A stretch of DNA of 64,000 bases, taken from assembly GCA_051294375.1 (NCBI GenBank), contig CM119264.1:5935621-5999620 (forward strand), in the 5' to 3' direction. The notes beneath the pieces were generated by a model. That model worked only from the letters and a program-made list of their open reading frames with translations. It did no database searches and was not told the origin of the DNA. Positions 9,835 to 59,900 of this stretch are shown here, in pieces. The DNA comes from Paraspadella gotoi (Eukaryota > Animalia > Chaetognatha). The position numbers and the translations under genes are program-made. Each line of letters opens with the position of its first letter. Position 1 is the first letter of the stretch.

Positions 9835-11030
9835 AAAGTATCGTGATCTCGCCAGACGTTACTATCAAAGAAAATTAATGAAAACATCCGAAAAAAGACG
9901 AATGATTGATGAGATAACGAATTATAGATGTAATAGTAATTGATTGATTGATAAAATAGTAATTAATTGATGATATAATAGTAATTTAATTGATGTAATA
10001 ATAATTGATTAATTGATATAATAATAATTGAGTATAATAATAATTAATTGATATAATAATAATTTATTAATACAATGATAACCAATTATTGATGCAATGA
10101 TAACCAATTATTGATGCAATGATAACAAATGATTGATACAATGATACCATTAATGATACAATGATAATCATTCATTGATGCGATGATAGTCATTCATTGA
10201 TGCGATGATAGTCATTCATTGATGCGATGATAGTCATTCATTGATGCGATGATAATCATTATGATGCGATGATATCATTCATTGATGCGATGATAGTCAT
10301 TCATGATGCGATGATAGTCATTCATTGATGCGATGATAGTCATTCATTGATGCGATGATAGTCATTCATTGATGCGTATGTCATTATGATGCGATGATAG
10401 TCATTCATTGATGCGATGATAGTCATTCATGATGCGATGATAGTCATTCATGATGCGATGATAGTCATTCATTGATGCGATGATAATCATTCATTGATGC
10501 GATATATCATTCATTGACGCGATGATAGTCATTCATTGACGCGATGATATCATCATTGACGCGATGATAGTCATTCATTGACGCGATATGTCATCTTGAC
10601 GCGATGATAGTCATTAGCATATGTCATCATTGACGATGATAGTCATTCATTGACGCGATGATAGTCATTCATTGACGCGATGATATTCATTTATTGATGC
10701 GCGATAGTCATTCAGTTGCACGATAAGCATTCGTTGACACGATAAGCATTCGTTGACACGATAAGCATTCGTTGACGCGATGAGTCATTCATTGTAAATA
10801 AAATATGCGTGTATGAGTGAGAGAGAGAGGAAAATGAGAGAGAAAAAAAAGGAGAGAGAGAGAGAGAAGCTGGACAGCCGCTGCAGAGCTTATTAGAAGC
10901 TATATCTAAATTTTTAGCTTCCGATAGTTACACACTTTTACAATTTCCAGTGGTAAAAAAGCGTGACAACGATGATAACGGTCACAAAGAAGCAGAAACG
11001 ATCCAACATCACGCCATGACGGCCTTAGGC
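9835..11030. mobile_element. Dispersed modular repeat (DINE-1/Helentron-associated-like) containing a minisatellite
   Basis: Terminus AAGTAT..GTGATCTCGCCAGACGTTACTATCAAAGAAAATTAAT recurs at about 51095 and 59625. The module TTTAGCTTCC.AT.GTTACACACTTTTACAATTTCCA.TGGTAAAAAAGCGTGA recurs at about 52995, 60680 and 52110. Superfamily assignment is inference. Confidence 0.7.
10070..10795. repeat. 22-bp minisatellite array (ATAGTCATTCATTGATGCGATG)n
   Basis: Directly visible tandem units with sequence variants changing along the array. Confidence 0.95.
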
Positions 11031-27544: not shown

Positions 27545-28297
27545 TCACGGCGCAACGGTAGGAGCGAATCGCGAGACAAGGGCGATGACTTTGTGGGACA
27601 ATCCCACCAAAAAACCCGGGCACGATGGGTGACGGCTAACTTGCTCCAAGGATAGTCTCAGCTCGAAGAAGACCGTGCGACAGTACGGATTCCTTCTCGA
27701 CGCGTACCTCAGAGTCAAGAATCGGTAATAAAAAAATGGGAGAACGAGACCTCCCTTGCCGGACATGGCCAAAAAAACGGCGGCGGGCAGGAGAAAGATC
27801 TCGGTGCAGGCGATAAAGCGGAGAATCTGACCCTGCTTCGACTTCAGCTTGAGGATGATGGTCCGCATAGAGGTGCCGATGCTGGGGCCGATGGCGTCGA
27901 GGGCACCCACCGTGAAGGTGGAGGCATGAAGAAGGGCGTAGAGGATGACGGGCATCACGGCCAAAGTCAGCGGCGTCGTGTGGTAAAACATGAGGCAGAA
28001 AAAGAGGTAATGACAAGAGTCCTCGAGTACGAGGGCGCCGAAAAACTCGCGCGTAAAGGTGACGGGCCGAGCGGCGCGCTGATGTAGACGCAGAGCACTG
28101 GTGGCGGCGCCGCCGAGAAAGATGCGCTGGTAGAGGGATTGGGGATCACCGCCAAACAGGGGTAGCACGAAGAGCACTCCGAAAAATACGGTGAGGACAC
28201 GCGTGAGCCACAGCGCAGTGTCCACTTTGTTGGCGAGGAGGTAGTGGACTAATCCCGTCGGTTGAGAGCTAGGTGGGGCGTCGTTGCGATCAGCCAT
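27545..28297 (-). CDS. TMEM33: Transmembrane protein 33 (Pom33/Krueppel homolog 2 family), single exon
   Basis: DTALWLTR, ATSALRLHQR, LVLEDSCHYLFF, ILRFIACTEIFLLP, FFYYRFLTLRYASRRNPYCRTVFFELR. Confidence 0.95.
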   Translation of the reverse strand: MADRNDAPPSSQPTGLVHYLLANKVDTALWLTRVLTVFFGVLFVLPLFGGDPQSLYQRIFLGGAATSALRLHQRAARPVTFTREFFGALVLEDSCHYLFFCLMFYHTTPLTLAVMPVILYALLHASTFTVGALDAIGPSIGTSMRTIILKLKSKQGQILRFIACTEIFLLPAAVFLAMSGKGGLVLPFFYYRFLTLRYASRRNPYCRTVFFELRLSLEQVSRHPSCPGFLVGLSHKVIALVSRFAPTVAP

Positions 28298-28508
28298 TTT
28301 TGTTTTGTTCTTTTTTTTATATTGCGATTTTCAGTTATGATTAGAAACACGCGTCCTGAAAACGGGAACGGTGACAAAAGAACGGAAATTATGTATATAA
28401 CGAAAACGAATAACAAGGAAAAAATAACAATTGTCCAAAGATTAATAAATAATATTTATAAAAAGTATAAAATAAATTATCGAATTAATTTCGACAATAA
28501 TTTTCGTT

Positions 28509-30176
28509 TTATCCCGACCGCCAGCCTTCCCTCAGCCGACGGGCCAACCTCTCTCGCACCGCGACGTATTTCCTTAACTCCGCCACGTTTTCATTTTCTC
28601 CCGGATCGAGTCGAAGATCATAGAGCTCGCGCGCCATCATCTTTGAAAAATCCCCAGTCATCGAAGTGACATTAAAGTCGATCCATTCGCCGTAGCGATA
28701 GTCGCGAGTGAGAATCGAATATCCCATAAGACGGACCTCATTTAGTCTGGGCTCGTCGCTGTTCGGAATGGCCGTGGGTCGCGGTCCCGGCCGGGGAAAT
28801 TGGGAGAAGACTCTATCCTTTCTCCTAGCTCTTTTTGAAGTAGAAAATTCGGAGAAGAAGCTCGTGCCCTCTGTGCACAGCTCGGGCGCTGAACCCTGCG
28901 GACAGATAGGAATCGTTTCCTTGACAGCCATCTCGACCAGGGTGGGCATTAAGTCGACTAATTCGACGAAACGATCGGTCACGTTGATCCGGTCGAGTCC
29001 TTTTTCTGCTTTGTCTCTCCTAAAGGGGTCTTGAAGGGAAAACTCTTGCAACCCATCCGCCCTCGGGGATTCGGGATCGAAAATGACGAGGGGGACTTGG
29101 ACTGCAGCTTCGAAGTTGCTGTACTTAGCCCATTCCCCGTGCTCTCCCAAACTCCAACCGTGATCGCCCGTGAAAAGGATGATCGTGTTTTTATGCAGGT
29201 TCGGCATTTCTTCAATCAAACCAAATAACAACCGCCCAAATAGATCGTCTACGTACGACACGGCGGCAAAGTAATGTTGCCTATTTATTCTTTGAAAGTC
29301 GTCGGGCAAGGGACCGAACGGAAATGGAGGGTGAATTGCGGTGACGTCATCGCGTCGCCGCAAATCGTTCCACGGATTCCATGCCACTTCCGGCATGCTG
29401 GAGGGGCGCGTCCTCGTCGATGGGAGGCGCAATGAATTTAATGGGTAAAGACTCAAATACCTTTTGGGAATTCTGAAAGGAATATGTGGCTTGTGGTAGC
29501 CGACGGCCAGAAAAAACGGACGGCTCGAGTTTTTGATTTTACGAACAAAGTTGAGCGCGGCGTCGTTGGTCTCCAAATCGGGCAGCGTTCCCATCGGTTG
29601 CGTTTCGACGTCGACGGCGCAGGCTACATTCTCGAACAGTTCGTCAACGCTCTGACCGACGGAGCGTAATCCAGGACAAGTTGCCGCGTTTTCGAAAGCC
29701 AGCGAGGCCGGATGGTAAGGATATTGCGACCAACTCCACGGAAAATCATCCGTAAAACCGGAAGCCCGGCCCGGATGAAATACCTTGCCGAAGGAGGCAG
29801 TTTCGTATCCCCTCTCTTTAAAAAACTGAGGGAGGGTGGTAAAGTTACCGATGGCACGACGCCAATAATGGCTATCCTGGTCGATCAGCTTGGTAGAGTC
29901 GGGCCTCCGACTCGTCAAGAAAGAGGTTCTACTGGGGCCGCACAAAGCTTGGTTGGCATATGCGCGTGAAAAGGTGAGCGAATGTTCGGAAAACGCTTCC
30001 AAGTTGGGAGTGACCATCCGCTCGCAATCAAGGCAGCGGTAAGTACTCAGTTGAGGGCGTAAATCGTCTGCGACGATGAAAACGACATTTTTAACGTGGG
30101 TCGAGGAAAGTGTGAAAGAAGAGCTTGACAAAAATAAAAGGTGGAACAGAGTCAGGAATATGTTCAAAGAACGCAT
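28509..30176 (-). CDS. IDS: Iduronate 2-sulfatase, single exon
   Basis: Signal peptide, NVVFIVADDLRP, sulfatase CGPSRTSFLTSRRPD, GKVFHPG, GYHKPHIPF, GDHGWSLGEHGEWAKYSNF. Confidence 0.94.
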   Translation of the reverse strand: MRSLNIFLTLFHLLFLSSSSFTLSSTHVKNVVFIVADDLRPQLSTYRCLDCERMVTPNLEAFSEHSLTFSRAYANQALCGPSRTSFLTSRRPDSTKLIDQDSHYWRRAIGNFTTLPQFFKERGYETASFGKVFHPGRASGFTDDFPWSWSQYPYHPASLAFENAATCPGLRSVGQSVDELFENVACAVDVETQPMGTLPDLETNDAALNFVRKIKNSSRPFFLAVGYHKPHIPFRIPKRYLSLYPLNSLRLPSTRTRPSSMPEVAWNPWNDLRRRDDVTAIHPPFPFGPLPDDFQRINRQHYFAAVSYVDDLFGRLLFGLIEEMPNLHKNTIILFTGDHGWSLGEHGEWAKYSNFEAAVQVPLVIFDPESPRADGLQEFSLQDPFRRDKAEKGLDRINVTDRFVELVDLMPTLVEMAVKETIPICPQGSAPELCTEGTSFFSEFSTSKRARRKDRVFSQFPRPGPRPTAIPNSDEPRLNEVRLMGYSILTRDYRYGEWIDFNVTSMTGDFSKMMARELYDLRLDPGENENVAELRKYVAVRERLARRLREGWRSG

Positions 30177-30885: not shown

Positions 30886-32393
30886 TCAAGCATTTCGTTC
30901 TTCGGCATCGCGAAACTTCTTTGCGGCGCCCACGCCGTCCTCGTCACGGCTCCGGTGCCTCATTGGCGCCTCCGTGATCGAGATCACCGGCAAACACGAG
31001 GCAGTGTGGGCGACGCCGTCGAGGGCGGATGGTTCCTCTTTGATTTGTTTGACCCCAGAAGATCCGACGGCAACATCGCGGTCGTCGCATTCTCCGCTCG
31101 ACTGCAACGACAGGCTAGAAGAACCCCAGGGAAAGTAGGAGGACGAATCGAGGGGAGAGTCGTCGCCCATGGAATTTCCGAAGACGTTGTACAGGCCGGT
31201 GGAGGCGGCGGCGAAATTGGGCGGAGCCCCAGGATAGGAGGGCGTGGCCAGCGAAACCACGGGCGTGGTCAAGGGCAGGCCCGGGGATGCGCGCGGACGG
31301 AGAAGTGATGGAGACGAGCCATTAACAATGGAGCCACCGGAAAACGTTAAGGAACTGGGCGTGGGAAGTTAATGAGAGGTTAACAAAAATATACAGTTAA
31401 ACACAATGCGGAACTTTTCTCAGTGAAATGTATTTACCAAACAAAACAATTTTTCTCTTAAATCTACCTAATCTTTTCGACTTTCGGCCGTGCTTGGTTG
31501 CTGACGTGAGAATTCGGTGAGGGCGAAAGACGCCGCAACGACTGCGGTTCCTGTGGCTGCTGCGAATGAGAAGTCGAGATCAGAGAAAGGGCCTCATGCT
31601 TGGGCGTCTGCTGCTGCTCTCTCCGAAAATCCTCGCCGAGTGACCGTTTTGACGTCGACTGCCCATGGGAGGGAATGTCAACGCGCAATTTTGGGCGCGT
31701 CTGACTCACGGTGGGCGGAAGGTTGTGCCTGGAAGGTGGCCTCATCGGATCCGGGAGCGAAGAACGAGGAGGAGCTTCCACGTTCTTGACGGGACTTCCA
31801 CAAAACGCGGACGAAGAGGAATCAAACACGAATTCCACGCCGCTTCCTCGTCCGTCTACTAGACCGCTAGGACCGGCGACGGGAGAATCGTTCTCCGACT
31901 CGCGATCCACGACGACGGGAACAGAGACGGGCTGCGAAGTAGGGTAATCGCTGCCGCTGCCGCCTCCCATCGTTCCACCACGCCTTTTTTCCCGGTCAAT
32001 GAGCGACGCAAACTCAAGGTCAACCCGTTCCGCCGTCTTGACAGTGTTCGGCGTGAGTGCGCAAGATGGACCGGGGTCGTCCTCGTCAGGCTCGTCGGGA
32101 CTCTCGCAACCCGACTTTTCCCGTTTGGTCAGCGTGTCGGATATGTCAGAATTTGTGCGGGACTCGTGCGGCTCGTTGTACTCGGTGTACTTTAGCAGGA
32201 TCTTGTCCATATCGGAGGAGGCGTACTGGAACAGCTTGTTGCCAGAGTTGAAGATGATGAGGGCAATCTCGCAATCGCAAAGAACCGAGAGCTCGTAAGC
32301 CTTTTTCATGAGGCCGAATTTTCGCTTGGTGAAGGTGACTTGGCGATTCCGTTCGTCGCCGATGCGTGCGATAGAAATCTTTTTTCGTCCCAT
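30886..32393 (-). CDS. MEF2: Myocyte enhancer factor 2 (MADS + MEF2 domain), two exons
   Basis: [48 protein letters not shown]...[19 protein letters not shown]. An intron at about 31470-31370 is followed by [11 protein letters not shown] and IKEEP. Confidence 0.97.
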
Positions 32394-32774
32394 AATCCCT
32401 GGTTTGTGTTTTTATTTTAAAATCGATTAAGCCCAAATTTTTATTTATTTCGTACAAAACAACTGGATGACTATAATATTTATTAAATTATTATACTGTA
32501 AAATTGCCCGTTGATATAGCACCAATTCCGTTTTTCTTTCTTGATATATTTTTAATCTTGATCAGTACGTCAAAATACAATCGAATGCAGTTAAGGCCTA
32601 ATAAAAGAAAAAGTTAACAATAGGGAATCAACAAAAAGGGACGAAAAGTCATCGGCAGCAATGATAAAACTTATTTATTTGACCATCAAGAAAAAACGAT
32701 TCGATCAGAAGTGTGTCATCGCGAATTATAGATCCTAATCAAAAGACAACGACCAGGCTAGTCCCTACGCGCCA

Positions 32775-35012
32775 TCACGAATCCTCGACCAACGTCAAAA
32801 AACACGTTTCCTCCAAATATCCTAAGAATATTTTTTCCTCTTCCGTCTCGGGTCGAGCGGAAGACGTGACGCGGGGAAGTTTGTAAGGAATGTCCGAGTC
32901 TCCTCCGGGAATGGATCGTCCCGCTTCGTCGAGTCGCACGATGTCCCGGACGCTTTTGGCGTTCTCCAGCACTTCCTCGTCGGTCGAATCGTAGTCGTCG
33001 AAATCGTCTTCGTATTCTTCGTCCTTTTCCTCTTCCTCGTCTTCCTCGTAATCGTCCCCGTACTCTACCTCTTCCTCGCTTTCCTCTTCGAAATCCTCAT
33101 CGTAGCCTCGTTCCAACTTCTGCCAGCTTTCCGCGTTAACGACTTTCGAGCCTACGACGAGAAGATCCGCGCCGCCACGATCGACATTTTCAAAATTCTC
33201 GAGAGTTTCGACTAGACTTGACGAGAGTTTCGGTGGGGAGTCATTCTTCCCACCGCCGCTTCGAGTCAACTCCCTTTGCGTCTTTAAAATCTCCTTTTCG
33301 TCGATAAAGGCGTCCAATCGTTCAGCGACGACGGGGTCCCTGAGAAGTCGCTGCGCCGTGGGGCGTTCGACGGGGTCGGGGCGAAGTAAGGCGTCGACGA
33401 TCTCGTGGAGCGAAGAAGAATAACGCCGATCAACGTCGAAAGGGGCGAAGTCGGCGCGGGAGATTTTCGCGAAGAGGCTTAATAGGTTTTGGGCGTCGAA
33501 GGCGCGACGGAGCGCGACCAGTTCGTAGAGAAGGCAGCCCAGGCTCCACATGTCCGATTGGGTGGAATAAGGCACATCTATTGAAAAGAATTCCGAATTT
33601 AGTGAGAAGCTTTTGAAATATGCTCTCCGCCCTACCCAGTCGTTATTACCCTGCACAAGCTCGGGGCTGAGGTAGCAGGGGGTTCCTACGCAAGTGACGG
33701 CGACGTCGTCCGCCGCCAGGGTCTTCGCAATCCCGAAATCCCCGATCTTTACTGTCTTGCTTTTGACGAGGAAGACGTTGGCCGCTTTGAGGTCGCGATG
33801 AATCACCCGTTGCGAATTCTGGAAAGAAATCGGTTTCACCGTTACCTTCATTCAGAAAATAAAATAAATCCACAAATTGATTATGTAGTTACTAAAAATA
33901 TACCCTTTTACTTGTCTTACCAAGCAAGAAACTGTAGAAACTGGGTTTTAATTTAATTGTGGTATGGCAACGGGAGGATAGCCTGTGATACCCGGGGCGC
34001 GGGGTATCTCACCAACTGGCGTAGGGGCTGCGGACCCTCAGTGACCGCCTCCTGTCACTGGCATGTTTATACCGGCACCGTCACATTTAAGCCAGAACCG
34101 GGATACCCGGGGATTGAACCCGGGACGCACGGATGGAATGAGATGATTTAGCCTGCTCAGCCATTGAGACGAGGCTGAGGACGGACAGCAGTGAGGCAGC
34201 TTTAAGTCTTGCTGCCACAGTGGCACAATTAAATTAAAACCCAGTTTCTTTTCATAAAAATGCTCAAGGACAAATACGCGAGTATTTGTGTCATTGCTTG
34301 GTATGACAAGTAAAAGGGTATATTTTTAGTAACAACATAATCATCGAGTCTTATCGCTAACCGGTCCCCTCGACATACGTGGAGATAGTGGAGCGCGAGA
34401 AGAACTTGGATGAACCATTTCCAGATAAGAGTTTCGGGAATTAATGATTCGGATTCGGCAGCGGTGGCGATCTGATCGGCGAGGGTTCCTCCGTCGCAAT
34501 ATTCCTACAGGTTAGGGAAGAACTTCTCAAATTACTCAGACAATCACGAGGTTTTTTTTTTTCATATAAAATACCTGCACAATACACAAGAGATTCGGTT
34601 CGTGGAAGAAGTACTCGTCGAAGTGGACGATATGAGGATGAGACAAAGACGCGAGGATGCGGGCTTCACGCTCCACCGCCTCTTTTGTTCTCGTTTTTCG
34701 TCTATCGTCAAGCTCGACCTGTTTGATAGCCTAAAACAAAGGAGCATTACCGGGAAATCCGAAAAAAAGTATTACGAAACTAGGAAATATTAAGCATAAC
34801 CAATATAACCAGGAATTAAATTAAAACTTAAAAGTTTTTATAATATTTTTATAAAAAAATTGATATCCATCTTTAATCTTTATATCACTTAATGATTGCA
34901 CCTTAAATTCGCCGGATGATAAGTGATTGGCGAGAAAGACGACGCCCCCCGTCCCCTTCCCGATTTGGCTTAACAATCTGTAGCGGTCCATCGCGATCAC
35001 CTTCGCCTCCAT
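32775..35012 (-). CDS. NIMA-related (NEK family) Ser/Thr kinase with acidic C-terminal tail, multi-exon
   Basis: MDRYRLLSQIGKGTGG, AIKQV, EYCDGG, HRDLKAANVFL, KIGDFGIAK, GTPCYLSPE, SDMWSLGC. Alternative start at 34992. Confidence 0.92.
33878..34343. mobile_element. Composite foldback element: two nested inverted-repeat pairs enclosing a SINE-like core, in a NEK intron
   Basis: Outer arms TGATTATGTAGTTACTAAAAATATACCCTTTTACTTG / CAAGTAAAAGGGTATATTTTTAGTAACAACATAATCA. Inner arms GAAACTGGGTTTTAATTTAATTGTG / CACAATTAAATTAAAACCCAGTTTC. Confidence 0.85.
33962..34185 (-). mobile_element. tRNA-derived SINE-like element
   Basis: Minus strand has A-box TGGCTGAGCAGG, clear B-box GGTTCAATCCC, and tail GTCACTGAG...GAGATACCC...GGGTATCACAGGC...GTTGCCATAC. 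Confidence 0.7.
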
Positions 35013-35015
35013 AAC

Positions 35016-35878
35016 TCAAGCCACCGCTAAATACTTGCGGCAAATGTTCCACAGCAAGAATCCAGAAACGACAACGCTGACGGAAGTGTGAAGAATTTTT
35101 CGGGCGTAATCATTGCGTCTAACGAGTACGACCGGGTTAGGGCTCTGCAACAGGTGAAGGGGCAGTTGCGAGAGTTGGACGGCGTGGCGCGTCGGGGAAC
35201 AGGGCTGGAACTTGGAGGCGGGATCGAATTGCCAGGAGATGTTATAAAGGCCTGAAACCAGAGAATATATAGCGAGAGAAATATATGGATAGCAGATAGA
35301 TTAGTAGAATCAAATGTAAATCCCCAATTTTCCCGTCATTCTATTCCTAAAAATGTCAAAACTCACCAGTAGCGAGAGCGGAGGCGACGGCAAAGGGGGC
35401 GGCGACGTGAATCCTAGCGGGGAAAACGACGCAAGCGACGACACCGACGGTGCCAGAAACGACGGCCGCCTTGTGAACGAAATTGCCGACGGTGATCCAG
35501 CGGAGAACTTCGCTGCCAAGCGAATCTGGTTCAACGATGACGACGGTGCAGCGTGACTCCAGCGCCGTCTCCAGCTCTTCCTCGTATTCCTCTCGGTTGG
35601 ACTGCTCGCGGCGTCGAATGATGTAGAGGCGCTCCTGGGACTCGGCTAGATGGAGCCGAAAGTGAGAAGTTGTGAATGAAGAGAGATAAATTGAAATAAT
35701 TTTTAATTAAGAGGTAATTAATGTGTGAGAAATGAGCTTCGATCAGGGAAAAAGAATACTGTGATGAAAGTAAATAGATAAGATAAGATAAGCTGCACTT
35801 AAACTTACCTGTGGACGGCTTTAGAACAGTTTTCTTGGATTGTCGCGATTTTCTTAAATCATGATCATGATTGGCCAT
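35016..35878 (-). CDS. TMEM11: Transmembrane protein 11, mitochondrial, three exons (missed by the ORF track)
   Basis: Spliced product MANHDH...|ESQERLYIIRR...EEELETALESRCTVVIVEPDSLGSEVLRWITVGNFVHKAAV...|GLYNISWQFDPASKFQ...PVVLVRRNDYARKILH...KYLAVA*. TGA at 35016-35018. Confidence 0.93.
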
Positions 35879-36375
35879 AATGGCATCGCTAAACGAAAAA
35901 AAAAAGTTAAACGATTCTTCCAACTGGATGGTTGAAAGTATAGAATACGGGATACGCTCAATTACAAGTGAATTATAGAATATAAATACTTGTAGACGAT
36001 TGATTTTGATGCCTTGACCGAGAAATAACAATTGTAAAATCTTAGAAAAAAACTAATTCCAAAAAATTGACAGACAAAATCGAAATAGTTAAACCCCAGT
36101 TTTTCTTGATTCTAGTCAGCAAATACCAGCAGGGATCTAAAAAGGGATATTACTTCTAGTTGCACTACTATGTTTTATGATAGGATGAAAAACGGAATTA
36201 ACCAAACTTTCTATCGTGTCCCATTCGAAAAAAGCGAGAATTACATAAGAGCTACATTCAAACTATTAAAACCTCAAAAACCCCATTACCCGATCAACGG
36301 TAACAACTGCTGACTAAGATGAGAACTACGAAGAGATCAAACGAGTTTTAAAAAAACAAAAAAACTAATAGCGGA

Positions 36376-37850
36376 TAGTGTTCCGATAACCGTTAACAGT
36401 TAACGGTTATTAACGGTTAAAAATAATTTTAACTTAACCGTTAATATATTTATTTTAACGGTTAAATTCGGTTAATTTTCAAGTATGATTTTTGTTATGA
36501 AAACTTTGATTTTTTAAGAAAAAAAATTTTTTTCCTTATTCTCCTCTCCCTTTCTCACTATATTTTTCCCCCTCTCTCTGTTCTACATTTTCCCCTATTT
36601 TTTCTTTGTTATTTTCAACCCTTTTAATCTTTTTCTATTTTAATCTATTATCATTTTTTTTCTGCCCTTCCCATATTTTTTTTACTTACTTTCTCCCAAT
36701 TGTTTTCGTTTTTCCTTTCAGCTAATTAAGCATTTACAAAGAATATTTTGAAATATAATATGCATCTGCATATATTTTTTTGCAAATCAAATTTTTACAT
36801 GCAATAATATTCTATTTTGCTAATAAAAAATAAATAATCTTTCTTCTTTTACTTTTTTAGCTTTTTCTTTCAATTTTTAAAATGAACAAAGAAGTAAATA
36901 TAATAAAGCCGAATGAATGAAAAAATTTAAAAAAAAATAAAATAAAAAAATTATTAGAAAACATTTAAAAAATGAACAATAGAAGGAATGAATCTTTGAA
37001 AAGACATTAAGGCTAACTAAAACTATCCTTCAATGATGATATACTTTACTTTAATAAAATTACAAAAAATATTTATTAATTAATAACTTCTTTGATCAAT
37101 CGATCATTTAAAAATTTAATTAATAAATTGATATTCATAATTAAGAGAAAATAAAGTTTATTTGTTTACAAACAACCGGTTTTTATTTCAAAAAACGGAC
37201 ATGTTTCGACTCTAGTTTTTCCGAGTCTACATCAGCGCGTGAGAGTCGAAACATGTCCTTTTAAAAATAAAAACCTGTTGTTTGTAAACAAATAAACTTT
37301 GCTTTCACTTAACTATAAACGTAACGAAAAGAAAGTCTTAATACAATATTTATAATTATATTTATATTTATGGTCATGGTTTATGAAAGACTAACAACAG
37401 AAAACATGCTTTCAAGAAACTAACAACTATAAAAATAATGAGGAAGAGAAATAGAAAAGCAAAAGCAAAAACGAAAGAAAGAAAGAAAAAGAGAGAAAGA
37501 GAAAACAAAATATACAGAATTAAAATTACATGTGCTTTTTCTTTCATTGTCTTTTTTCATATTTTATTATGCTATGAGGCAAAAAAATTTATTATAATGC
37601 TGTTTTTTCAAACCAATTTCTCATTTATCAACATAATGTGTACCTCATCTATCTGAAATAAAAGATAAAGACTATTCAGTAGCCGGAGTTAGGAGAAACA
37701 CAATTAAATACTTTAGTTAGTTGCAAATATTAATATTTTAAATTTAAAGTTAAATTATAAAATTAACCGATTTTAACGGTTAACCGTTAAAAACGTTAGT
37801 TTTAACGGTTAAGCGAAGTTCCTCAAAAATTAACGGTTAACGGAACCCTA
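36376..37850. mobile_element. Non-autonomous hAT-type DNA transposon, 1475 bp
   Basis: TIRs TAGTGTTCCG / CGGAACCCTA, an exact 8-bp TSD ATAGCGGA (36368-36375 and 37851-37858), and subterminal repeated AACGGTT/AACCGTT motifs. No transposase ORF. Confidence 0.9.
37145..37305. repeat. Short foldback (about 65-bp arms) nested inside the hAT element
   Basis: AAAGTTTATTTGTTTACAAACAAC...GGACATGTTTCGACTCT pairs with AGAGTCGAAACATGTCC...GTTGTTTGTAAACAAATAAACTTT. Confidence 0.85.
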
Positions 37851-37894
37851 ATAGCGGACGTGAAACCGGAGGAGGGAGGACGCGAAGCGTTTCT

Positions 37895-56991: not shown

Positions 56992-59900
56992 TCAAGATCT
57001 CTGATCTTCTGGACAGTCGGGTTGTGCCCGAGGATGAGCTTTCTTGAAAGCCTCCAGCTCTTCGCAGGCCGAGTTGACTTTCATCAGAGTCGGGAACGAA
57101 GACAAGTCGACGTTGAACCGCCTCGCGTTGTAAATCTAGTTGGAATACCAGAGTATTTGTAAGAGATGATTATTTAATATGATCTTAAATGAGATTGAAT
57201 CTCTCAATCTCATTTACATTCCATTTACATTCCAACATTCCATCAAGTAAGATATTAATGAACACTGAACCTCTTGGTACCTACTTATATGCTGATCTTA
57301 TCTCAGGCATACATACCCTCGTATATATTCAGTAGAGCGTTCAAAGATAACAAAATATAAGATATTTAATTTCATTCATTATTGTTTTAATGTAATAAGG
57401 TCTGAAGAATTCGATGATGATAACCATTTTTTGGTATAGTTTTATCTTCCTTGTCGCCAATGACGATTTTTGAGGCATATAAGGTGCTATTAAAATGGCG
57501 CAACCACTGTAGAGTATGAGAAACTAAAATTATTAAAATTTTATAAAAGTTATTATTAGCTTATATAATATGAAAATAAGACCCATAAAAATATTCGGTA
57601 AGTTTATTTACAAATTTTATATTTTATTAACAGCTTGTTAGCTATATTTATTAATAATTAGTAATTAAAAATAAGCTAAAGTGAAAAAATAAATATTTTG
57701 AAATTTTAAAACCGGATTTGAATTCCTTGCAAAAAGTTGATATAAGAAAGTATAATCTATTTTAACAAATTCTTTCATTAAGTTGGTTAAAAATATTAAA
57801 AACTATGATATTTGTTTAATTTTACCATTTTTGGCTTAAAATTATAGGTTTTCTAAATTTTGACTAACTTAATGACATAATTTTTTAATAAAAATTATAT
57901 TTTCTTATATCAACTTTTTGCAAGGAATGCGAATCCGGGATAACAAATTTTAAATTATTATTTTTTAACTTTAACCTAATTTTTATTTATAATTATTAAT
58001 AAATATAGCTAACTAACTTTTAATAAAACATAAAATTGAGAAATATTTTTACCAAAATATTTTTATAGGTCTTTATTTTTATATTTCAAAAGCTCATGTA
58101 AATTTTAAAAAATTAATAATTTGAATTATCATATCTATAATGTTTGCCCTATTTATTAGCATTTTATATACATTAAAAATCGTTATTTCCGACAAGAAAG
58201 ATGAAATTATACAAAAAATTGGTCATCACCATCGAATTCTTCAGACCTTATTACAGTAAAATAACTATGAATGGAATTTAATTGCTTATATTTTGTTATA
58301 TTTGAATGCTCTAATATTCAGGTATGATGCTGATCTTATCTCAGGCATACATACCCTCGTATATATTCAGGTATATGTATTATGTAATATAATGATTAAT
58401 GAATTTATATCCCTGAAGTTGTACGTCTATTTATTTGGCTTTGTCATGTCATGTCACTGGCGTATATTTTATTTTTCAATTTTAGCATTAGCCCATATTT
58501 ATATAGTACTCAACATAGAAAATGTCAAAATTTTAAAATGGTTTTTTCTTATTTTTGAAAAGCAGATTCGAATTCCTCATGAAAAGTTAATAAAAAGAAA
58601 AATAACTCTTTTTAGAAAATTTTTTTCATTAAGTGGGTCAAGAAAATAAAAAACTGTTATAGCTAACCTAAAATTAAATTTTAGTATAAATAAAAAATAT
58701 ATTTTTTAAATTTTTTAGCTAACTTAATGAAATAATTTTTTCTTAAGACTTATATTTTCTTTTATCAACTTTTTATGAGGAATTCGAATCTGCTTTTAAA
58801 CTAAGAAAAAACTATTTTAAAATTTTAACTTTTTTATGGTAAGTACTATGAGCTAATGCAAAAATTGAGAAATTAAAAAACTATTCGAATTTTGATCTGC
58901 AACTTTCACTACGCCTCAATCCTCATAGAACTCCAAAAATACGTGATTTATAAACTAATTAACGTAATGTCCAACTACAGTCTGACAGACACACAAACTG
59001 AAAAGTCTGATGTAGCGTCACTCAAAACCATTGTTCGAACGCCTTTTCCCAAACACCTGTGGGATCAAGCAGAGATCAGCGATGGTGACTTCGTCTCCGA
59101 CGCAAAACTTTCCCGCTGTTCCAAGGACCATCTCTTCAACTGCACGGAGGCCGGCGTCGATGACGTCATGAGCGAACGCCATCTTCTTCTCGTCGCCGAT
59201 TCGCTGCAACACCGACAGGTTTTGCAAAGGTTGGATTCCGGAGGCGATGGTCTCGGCGATAGAGCGCGCGCGGGCCTTCGCTACAGGATCGGCCGGAAGC
59301 AGCGAGGGCTTGGGGTGAGAATCTTCCAAAAATTCGATGATGGCCAAGGATTGAGTCAGAGTCACCCCATCATAGACGAGGACCGGAACCTGAGAGAAGA
59401 AGAGGTTATGGAATAAGTGCGTCCAACAACACATAAATCGTTATTAAAAGCCATAAACCGAAAAACGTAAAATAACTACGTCACACCTGTTTCATTGGAT
59501 TTAGAGATTTGAATTCTTCATTGTGTTGCTGCCCACCTTCTTTGACAAGATGTACGGCTTCGGTGTCGTAGTCAATACCTTTGAGAGACAACGCAATGCG
59601 AACTCGCCAACTAAATAACGGGGAAGTATAGTGATCTCGCCACAAGTTACTATCAAAGAAAATTAATAAAAAAATCCGGAAAAAAAAACCCGAATGATTG
59701 ATCCGATAACGAATTATTGATGTAATAGTAATTGATTGATATAATAATAATTGATTATTGATGCAATTGGAGACAATGATAACCAAATATTGATGCGATG
59801 ATAACCAAATATTAATGCGATGAAAACAAAAAATTGATGCGATGAGTCATTCATCGTAAATAAAACAAATGCGTGTATGAGTGAGAGAGAAAAAGAGATA

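Follow-up and report, generated by a model that had tools for sequence, protein, structure and literature searches.

The window analysed here, a stretch of 64,000 nucleotides (nt) from contig CM119264.1 of the chaetognath Paraspadella gotoi, carries near its center a gene for the mitochondrial membrane protein TMEM11, followed on the same strand by an unrelated gene for a NEK12-like protein kinase, with only three bases between the stop codon of the first and the first in-frame ATG of the second. Both genes are transcribed leftwards (minus strand), and all coordinates are those of the window. The genes and the elements at their junction, including a candidate acceptor for spliced leader (SL) trans-splicing, are as follows.

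35016-35878, minus strand: TMEM11 (Mito_morph_reg) gene with three coding exons (35878-35809, 35645-35367 and 35251-35016) and a product of 194 amino acids, from the spliced model and Pfam
32775-35012, minus strand: NEK12-like kinase gene with five coding exons (35012-34902, 34730-34575, 34504-34379, 33818-33650 and 33577-32775) and a product of 454 amino acids; all introns are GT-AG in the model check
35016-35018, minus strand: TMEM11 stop codon TGA, read directly
35013-35015, minus strand: GTT, the sole three bases between the TMEM11 stop and the first in-frame ATG, read directly
35010-35012, minus strand: first in-frame kinase ATG (MEAKVIA...), with G at -3 and G at +4
34989-34991, minus strand: conserved kinase start, the ATG of MDRYRLLSQIGKG (MDRY), placed by alignment with relatives including contigs L010 and L014 described below
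35027-35033, minus strand: TATTTAG, the nearest consensus-like (YAG) acceptor 5' of the kinase start in the acceptor survey and a candidate SL trans-splice site (cut 35027|35026)

The TMEM11 and kinase genes and their junction

The TMEM11 product matches the Pfam profile PF14972 (Mito_morph_reg) from position 12 to 158 of 159, with an E-value of 3.4e-44 and 150.8 bits (cut-off 27). Its C-terminus (...CRKYLAVA*) stops at the place corresponding to the ends of its relatives (...CRKYLGVTST*, ...CRKYVA* and ...CRKYINS*), and the TGA is therefore taken as the natural stop. The kinase has a complete Pkinase domain (residues 11-270, 209.6 bits, E = 7e-62 in Pfam), and its best named matches are NEK-family kinases (E = 1e-63 to 1e-88), some Nek1/4/5/6-like and many annotated as 'NIMA-related kinase 12'; the NEK12-like subfamily label follows the names of these matches rather than a phylogeny. 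Orthologous kinases begin with MDSY, MDDY, MMESY or MNSY ahead of LLSEIGKG, so we read MDRY as the conserved start, and the seven residues that precede it (MEAKVIA), which have no counterpart among the relatives, as a possible species-specific N-terminal extension.

Intron 3 of the kinase gene contains an insertion (33878-34343) resembling a miniature inverted-repeat transposable element, with 50-nt terminal inverted repeats that are 96% complementary and a nested perfect 26-nt inverted repeat (33936-33961 and 34224-34249); the window-wide repeat scan reported no second copy.

On the minus strand the junction reads AAG TAT TTA GCG GTG GCT TGA GTT ATG GAG GCG AAG GTG ATC GCG ATG GAC CGC TAC. 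The MDRY ATG lies 24 nt past the TMEM11 stop, and the stop, the first ATG and the MDRY ATG are all in one frame; both candidate kinase AUGs have G at -3 and +4. An earlier note on this DNA had described the TGA, GTT and ATG as in frame and three nt apart, the MDRY methionine as 24 nt from the stop, an acceptor-like TATTTAG as lying inside the last TMEM11 codons and the junction as too short for a poly(A) signal or promoter. The minus-strand reading bears out each of these points, placing TATTTAG at 35033-35027 within the final TMEM11 codons and showing no AATAAA or variant of it between the stop and the kinase ATG. Two open reading frames (ORFs) share a frame by chance in one case out of three, and the shared frame is not kept in the relatives.

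The gene pair in other chaetognaths

The closest TMEM11 relatives are marine contigs that are 62-74% identical to the window, the best named animal reaching 47%; the kinase is 50-69% identical to those marine relatives and at most 52%, mostly 35-50%, to named animals. Three of the contigs have all or part of a published chaetognath SL at the 5' end, as compared with Table 3 in Marlétaz et al. 2008 (PMC2481426). In L008 all 33 nt of chaetognath SL1, GGAAGCTAAAATTCTTTTATTTGCTTAATTAAA, stand immediately 5' of the TMEM11 5' untranslated region (UTR), the 5' end of L001 is the final 11 nt of SL1, and that of L014 is the final 9 nt of SL2.0. These leaders mark the closest relatives as chaetognaths and show that TMEM11 is trans-spliced in them. 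The degree of identity, the gene order in common and a matching exon boundary all agree with a chaetognath origin of the window. The contigs with both genes have the following spacers, counted from the TMEM11 stop to the kinase ATG.

L001/L002: 145 nt, in spliced RNA assembled by JGI and Logan from Tara samples
L004/L005: 381 nt, in spliced RNA (JGI and Logan)
L014: 237 nt, in spliced RNA (Logan), with an AATAAA about 32 nt past the stop
L010-L013: 145 nt, in genomic DNA from the Tara metagenome
Window: 3 nt, in genomic DNA, or 24 nt when counted to MDRY

The first three entries are classed as spliced RNA because both ORFs are uninterrupted where the window has introns. TMEM11 and the orthologous kinase are thus together on intron-free RNA contigs in three other chaetognath species, and a fourth has the same gene order in genomic DNA (L010-L013), where kinase exon 1 ends GEFK|GT, as in the window. 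The two ORFs are out of frame in two of the four relatives (L001 and L010), where the ATG begins 148 nt past the first base of the stop, a distance that is not a multiple of 3. The spacers of the relatives do not align with one another; the sole conserved element is AAAGCTCYTCTGTGAT, present in L004 and its close relative L006. Three further TMEM11 contigs (L003, L008 and L009) extend 177-198 nt beyond the stop and reach no kinase; either their spacers are longer or the contigs stop first. In Lingula, the gene 5' of the NEK orthologue does not have a TMEM11 domain. Two scans of JGI metagenome contigs, one with the kinase N-terminus alignment and one with the TMEM11 alignment, gave no confirmed relative, and the Tara metatranscriptome contigs apparently lie outside that collection.

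Judged from these alignments and gene orders, TMEM11 and the NEK12-like kinase appear to be a two-gene, operon-type unit conserved across chaetognaths: the pair has been kept in at least five divergent lineages with the spacer sequence free to change, and the window's species has reduced to nothing a spacer that its relatives keep at 145-381 nt. The earlier note had proposed looking for the arrangement in related genomes, and what is found there is the adjacency, not the 3-nt spacing or the shared frame. The pair could serve as a handy marker operon for chaetognaths, with this species as the end-point of spacer loss, in which 3' end formation and trans-splicing must both depend on signals within coding sequence.

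We note two minor features of the relatives. TMEM11 intron positions vary among species: in L010 (226-675, compared with 35645-35016 in the window) a single exon extends from SVLIIEP... through the stop, with no break at the position of the window's intron 2, and an intron interrupts the region that is continuous in exon 2 of the window. In L001, the last 18 nt (2588-2605), which lie beyond the kinase 3' UTR and directly 3' of the acceptor-like GTTTTCAG, are identical to the 3' part of chaetognath SL2.0 (AGTTTCAATTTGTTTAAA); the match may be due to chance, to an SL-like copy in the genome or to a join made through leader k-mers during assembly, and L002 stops before it.

Transcription and processing across the junction

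Both SL trans-splicing and operons are documented in chaetognaths. Spadella cephaloptera has an RPS14-PCNA operon with 3 nt between the upstream polyadenylation (poly(A)) site and the downstream acceptor (Marlétaz et al. 2008, PMC2481426), and in Paraspadella gotoi about 48% of genes are trans-spliced and 18% are in operons, which by definition there are same-strand genes with less than 250 bp between them and which have no leader specific to operons (Piovani et al. 2025, PMC12460157). For this reason tight same-strand pairs are normal in the phylum, and SL-resolved polycistrons are their usual explanation. The TMEM11-NEK pair resembles these operons in having same-strand neighbors, an extremely short distance that falls under the 250-bp limit (3 nt, or 24 nt to the conserved methionine; PMC12460157) and an upstream gene that carries SL1 or SL2 in the relatives. 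It differs from RPS14-PCNA, where the 3 nt separate mRNA ends and the UTRs are retained, in that here 3 nt separate coding sequences. The arrangement is therefore an expected one, SL-resolved operons being already well documented in chaetognaths, and it is the collapse of the spacer to nothing that is unusual. Because the ORFs are 3 nt apart (24 nt to the conserved methionine), the gap is too small to hold the TMEM11 3' UTR as well as the kinase 5' processing site, and these must overlap the coding sequence of the neighboring gene. We have not met the TMEM11-NEK pair in the chaetognath operon literature, in which no search was aimed at it, and the accessible part of the chromosome 1 list in Supplementary Table 1 of PMC12460157 has no Mito_morph_reg, Tmm11, Mef2 or Tmm33 row.

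The elements considered in the processing of the two mRNAs, besides TATTTAG, are as follows.

35900-37890, minus strand: AT-rich 2-kilobase (kb) gap (GC fraction 0.26-0.30) between a PRKCSH/OS9-like gene and TMEM11, from the composition profile and the ORF/Pfam map; likely the promoter region of the two-gene unit
35889-35910, minus strand: TTAACTTTTTTTTTTCGTTTAG, a strong acceptor (17/20 pyrimidines) 10 nt 5' of the TMEM11 ATG and candidate SL trans-splice site of the first cistron
35252-35366, minus strand: TMEM11 intron 2, AT-rich, with ATTGG (35328-35324) and TATATA (35271-35266) in the motif scan; the likeliest site for an embedded kinase promoter, should there be one
35027-35113, minus strand: out-of-frame 28-codon ORF from the sole ATG of TMEM11 exon 3, from the AG and ORF survey
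34872-34884, minus strand: TATAAAGATTAAA (TATAAA at 34884, ATTAAA at 34877), followed by CA and a T-run, in kinase intron 1; candidate TMEM11 3' end, from the motif scan
32674-32679, minus strand: canonical AATAAA of the kinase gene, 96 nt past the kinase stop, from the sequence check

We favor, as the probable course of events, one transcript started from a promoter 5' of TMEM11, with the kinase mRNA produced by SL trans-splicing at an acceptor in the last TMEM11 codons. The promoter, in the AT-rich 2 kb, would drive a single primary transcript across both genes, and a leader would be spliced onto the TMEM11 5' end at the T-rich acceptor that lies 10 nt ahead of the TMEM11 ATG. This acceptor (T10CGTTTAG|CG, cut 35889|35888) has the same TTTAG|CG form as TATTTAG|CGG, the nearest consensus-like site in the last TMEM11 exon, at which the kinase mRNA would be freed; an acceptor for the kinase must lie in that exon because the spacer has been lost in this species. 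With a join at 35026, which is 11 nt before the end of the TMEM11 stop codon, the kinase mRNA would begin SL-CGGUGGCUUGAGUUAUGG (leader junction SL-CGGTGGCTTGAGTTATGG) and have the ATG at 35012 as its first AUG. In the survey, which covered every AG 5' of the kinase start as a possible acceptor, TATTTAG is the sole YAG site within the 50 nt that precede the kinase ATG; other YAG sites in TMEM11 exon 3 are at 35205, 35145, 35119 and 35077, and at 35015, 35007 and 35001 the AG follows a weak pyrimidine tract and the base at -3 is a purine. TATTTAG is formed by the Tyr-Leu codons TAT TTA; TTA accounts for 8% of the Leu codons counted in six coding stretches sampled from the window, and the relatives have CTC, ATC, GTC or ATA at this position, so that the rare Leu codon gives a weak hint in favor of an acceptor role.

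The 3' end of the TMEM11 mRNA must form further downstream, because this mRNA has to keep its stop codon. No AATAAA is present in 35400-34850 in the motif scan, and in having no 3'-end signal of its own (AATAAA or variant) between its stop and the kinase ATG, the upstream cistron departs from the standard SL-operon layout. The nearest variants of a poly(A) signal 3' of the stop are the TATAAA and ATTAAA of kinase intron 1, and the TMEM11 mRNA would most likely end there, near 34860, with a 3' UTR of about 155 nt that overlaps kinase exon 1.

These positions raise the possibility, which we offer tentatively and with less confidence than the operon itself, of an either/or switch: with the kinase acceptor inside the TMEM11 coding sequence and the TMEM11 poly(A) site inside kinase intron 1, each primary transcript would give the TMEM11 mRNA or the kinase mRNA, never both. 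Mutually exclusive trans-splicing inside TMEM11 was one of four options that the earlier note offered with no preference among them, and it is the best supported of the four, given the leaders on TMEM11 in the relatives, the RNA contigs shared by the two genes and the operons of the phylum, with the choice between mRNAs as its conjectural part. Were the switch real, the ratio of TMEM11 to NEK would be set by competition among trans-splicing, cis-splicing of kinase intron 1 and intronic polyadenylation, and an operon boundary with all of its processing signals in coding sequence would have been derived, within one phylum, from an ordinary spacer of 145-381 nt. If the switch is confirmed, the locus would be a clean setting, provided by nature, in which to ask whether an operon boundary with no spacer compels the production of one mRNA at the expense of the other.

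In the intercistron-less operons of Ciona intestinalis, one transcript is proposed to give either the upstream or the downstream mRNA (Satou et al. 2006, PMC1488885). The TMEM11-NEK junction is like these in having no intercistronic DNA, and most of the Ciona cases also have no canonical AATAAA upstream; in Ciona the same leader serves monocistronic and operon genes (PMC1488885). It is unlike them in belonging to another phylum, in which trans-splicing is thought to have arisen independently, and in that the Ciona boundary falls between UTRs and not at a stop codon. The SL1-type operons of C. elegans, as described in PMC1488885, are similar in that poly(A) and trans-splice sites are adjacent or overlapping and 3' end formation competes with trans-splicing, and dissimilar in having a division of labor between SL1 and SL2 and a canonical AATAAA in the upstream cistron. 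There, mutual exclusivity in the Ciona and C. elegans SL1-type operons is a proposal and not a demonstration.

The Ciona operons suggest a different cut for the kinase acceptor. The upstream Ciona mRNA ends exactly at the downstream acceptor AG, most such operons having no intercistronic DNA (PMC1488885), and a corresponding AG is formed here by the A of the TMEM11 stop and the next G (35016-35015); a cut at UGAG|UU would end the TMEM11 RNA with ...UGAG, start the kinase RNA with UUAUGG and, as the AG overlaps the stop, leave both products complete. We consider this cut improbable, since it calls for a GAG acceptor and none of the seven acceptors checked has a purine at -3, only 9 of the 20 upstream bases are pyrimidines and the TMEM11 mRNA would be left with a 1-nt 3' UTR.

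Several observations weigh against an SL-resolved operon with its acceptor at TATTTAG. Co-transcription in the window's species is an extrapolation from the relatives, and no protein more than 74% identical was found among a collection of 5.8 billion proteins. The pyrimidine tract of TATTTAG is modest (11/20, compared with 12-17/20 for the real acceptors checked), and the proposed TMEM11 poly(A) site consists of variant hexamers, whereas the kinase gene uses AATAAA. The 'bicistronic' contigs of the relatives show that the spacer is transcribed, not that single molecules cover both genes, because short-read assembly can merge overlapping transcripts. No contig with a spliced leader joined to the kinase was found, and a profile search with the kinase N-terminus for leader-joined 5' fragments gave four matches, none of them chaetognath-like (L015 is from another group). 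The kinase-only contigs L006 and L007, which come from two separate runs, start within 13 nt of each other in a region homologous to the L004 spacer, and neither has a leader, which could reflect an independent kinase 5' end.

The same contigs bear on a promoter embedded in TMEM11, another of the options in the earlier note and a live rival, which we rate as unlikely while giving it more credence than the other alternatives. The kinase would then start inside the TMEM11 gene, most likely driven from the AT-rich intron 2, and the two genes would be overlapping independent units, with TMEM11 exon 3 as kinase 5' UTR and the TMEM11 3' UTR overlapping kinase exon 1. Intron 2 has its ATTGG (35328) and TATATA (35271) about 55 nt apart just 5' of exon 3, one CCAAT/ATTGG is present in each spacer of L001, L004, L006 and L014, the leaderless L006 and L007 both begin in the spacer-homologous region, and overlapping independent transcripts could yield merged contigs. 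Matches to CCAAT and TATA are, however, expected by chance in AT-rich DNA, at an estimated 0.3-0.75 CCAAT/ATTGG per spacer, and a start in exon 3 would put the 28-codon ORF ahead of the kinase ATG. That ORF ends with the TAG of TATTTAG, 15 nt before the first kinase ATG, and any kinase mRNA begun further upstream would carry it as an upstream ORF. The adjacency of the genes is deeply conserved and the spacer sequence is not, which fits an operon better than a conserved promoter, and most of the tight same-strand pairs in this phylum have been validated as operons by their leaders (1,470 of 2,151 candidates; PMC12460157). The operon is the better supported of the two.

Two further options in the earlier note concern translation of a single mature mRNA, for which the structure of the junction is relevant: the junction RNA (161 nt) folds no better than shuffled sequences (z = +0.70). 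Ribosomes ending at the TMEM11 UGA of a bicistronic mRNA might reinitiate 3 or 24 nt further on, and the 3-nt distance from stop to start, the G at -3 and +4 of both AUGs and the spliced contigs of L001 and L014, each with a leader remnant and both ORFs, are compatible with this. Stops and starts within a few nt on one RNA occur in calicivirus subgenomic RNAs, where termination is followed by reinitiation, and in dicistronic genes such as Drosophila stoned. Reinitiation after an ORF of 194 codons is normally very inefficient in the absence of a dedicated RNA element. Unlike such translationally coupled bicistronic mRNAs, the TMEM11-NEK junction has no sign of a ribosome-tethering element or other structure, the close coupling is not kept in the relatives, and the phylum has a known route for separating cistrons. 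Reinitiation gains no specific support from the data, and we give it a low probability, much like that of the UGAG|UU cut.

Readthrough of the UGA would give a membrane-anchored TMEM11-NEK fusion protein, and the ORFs are indeed in frame with a single sense codon between them. Such a frame arises by chance in one case of three, the ORFs of L001 and L010 are out of frame, and the spacers are long in all of the relatives (145-381 nt). UGA-GUU is not known to be a readthrough context. There is no downstream structure, and the TMEM11 C-terminus stops where those of its relatives stop. The fusion is accordingly disfavored, on frame and spacing that are not conserved, on the UGA-G context and on the lack of structure, and is the most improbable of all the readings considered. 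The locus is also an annotation hazard, as automated pipelines are likely to fuse TMEM11 and NEK or to truncate one of them.

Loss of a spacer during genome assembly would accord with the presence of at least 145 nt between the ORFs in all of the relatives examined, but the window's own sequence gives no hint of it. Both coding ends are intact, with the natural TMEM11 C-terminus and kinase N-terminus flanking the junction, and there is no repeat or low-complexity sequence there; we judge an assembly artefact to be very unlikely.

Genomic neighborhood

From 4000 to 62000 of the window every recognizable gene is on the minus strand, giving at least 12 genes in one orientation over 58 kb. In order, they are an EF-Tu-type GTPase, an RCC1-like gene, TBCD (a single exon of 1,203 amino acids), ERH, TMEM33, a sulfatase, MEF2, NEK, TMEM11, the PRKCSH/OS9-like gene, a cation-efflux transporter, a SMARCC-like gene (SWIRM, SANT and SWIRM-associated domains) and others. 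An Rfam scan of the 64-kb window found no RNA family and hence no SL RNA, and chaetognath SL1 and the 3' part of SL2, looked for with up to three mismatches, gave no match, so that the window has no SL gene.

The junction between the kinase and MEF2 has an ordinary layout in 381 nt (32393-32777, minus strand). A strong acceptor, CTTTTTCTTTTATTAG|GCC, lies at about 32600, some 80 nt past the kinase AATAAA and ahead of the MEF2 ATG (32393), and MEF2 may be a third cistron of the TMEM11-NEK unit, although developmental regulators are reportedly under-represented in the operons of chaetognaths (PMC12460157).

Elsewhere in the window, about 211 nt separate the sulfatase stop (about 28509) from the TMEM33 ATG (about 28297) on the minus strand (28295-28511), which makes these genes a candidate operon pair by the 250-bp definition. 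A degenerate 22-nt tandem repeat (CGATGATAGTCATTCATTGATG) occupies 9890-10720 with about 30 units and flanks, and a shorter copy lies 49 kb away at 59680-59890; further interspersed repeat families (D4, D5, D7 and D11) are found in the AT-rich gaps.

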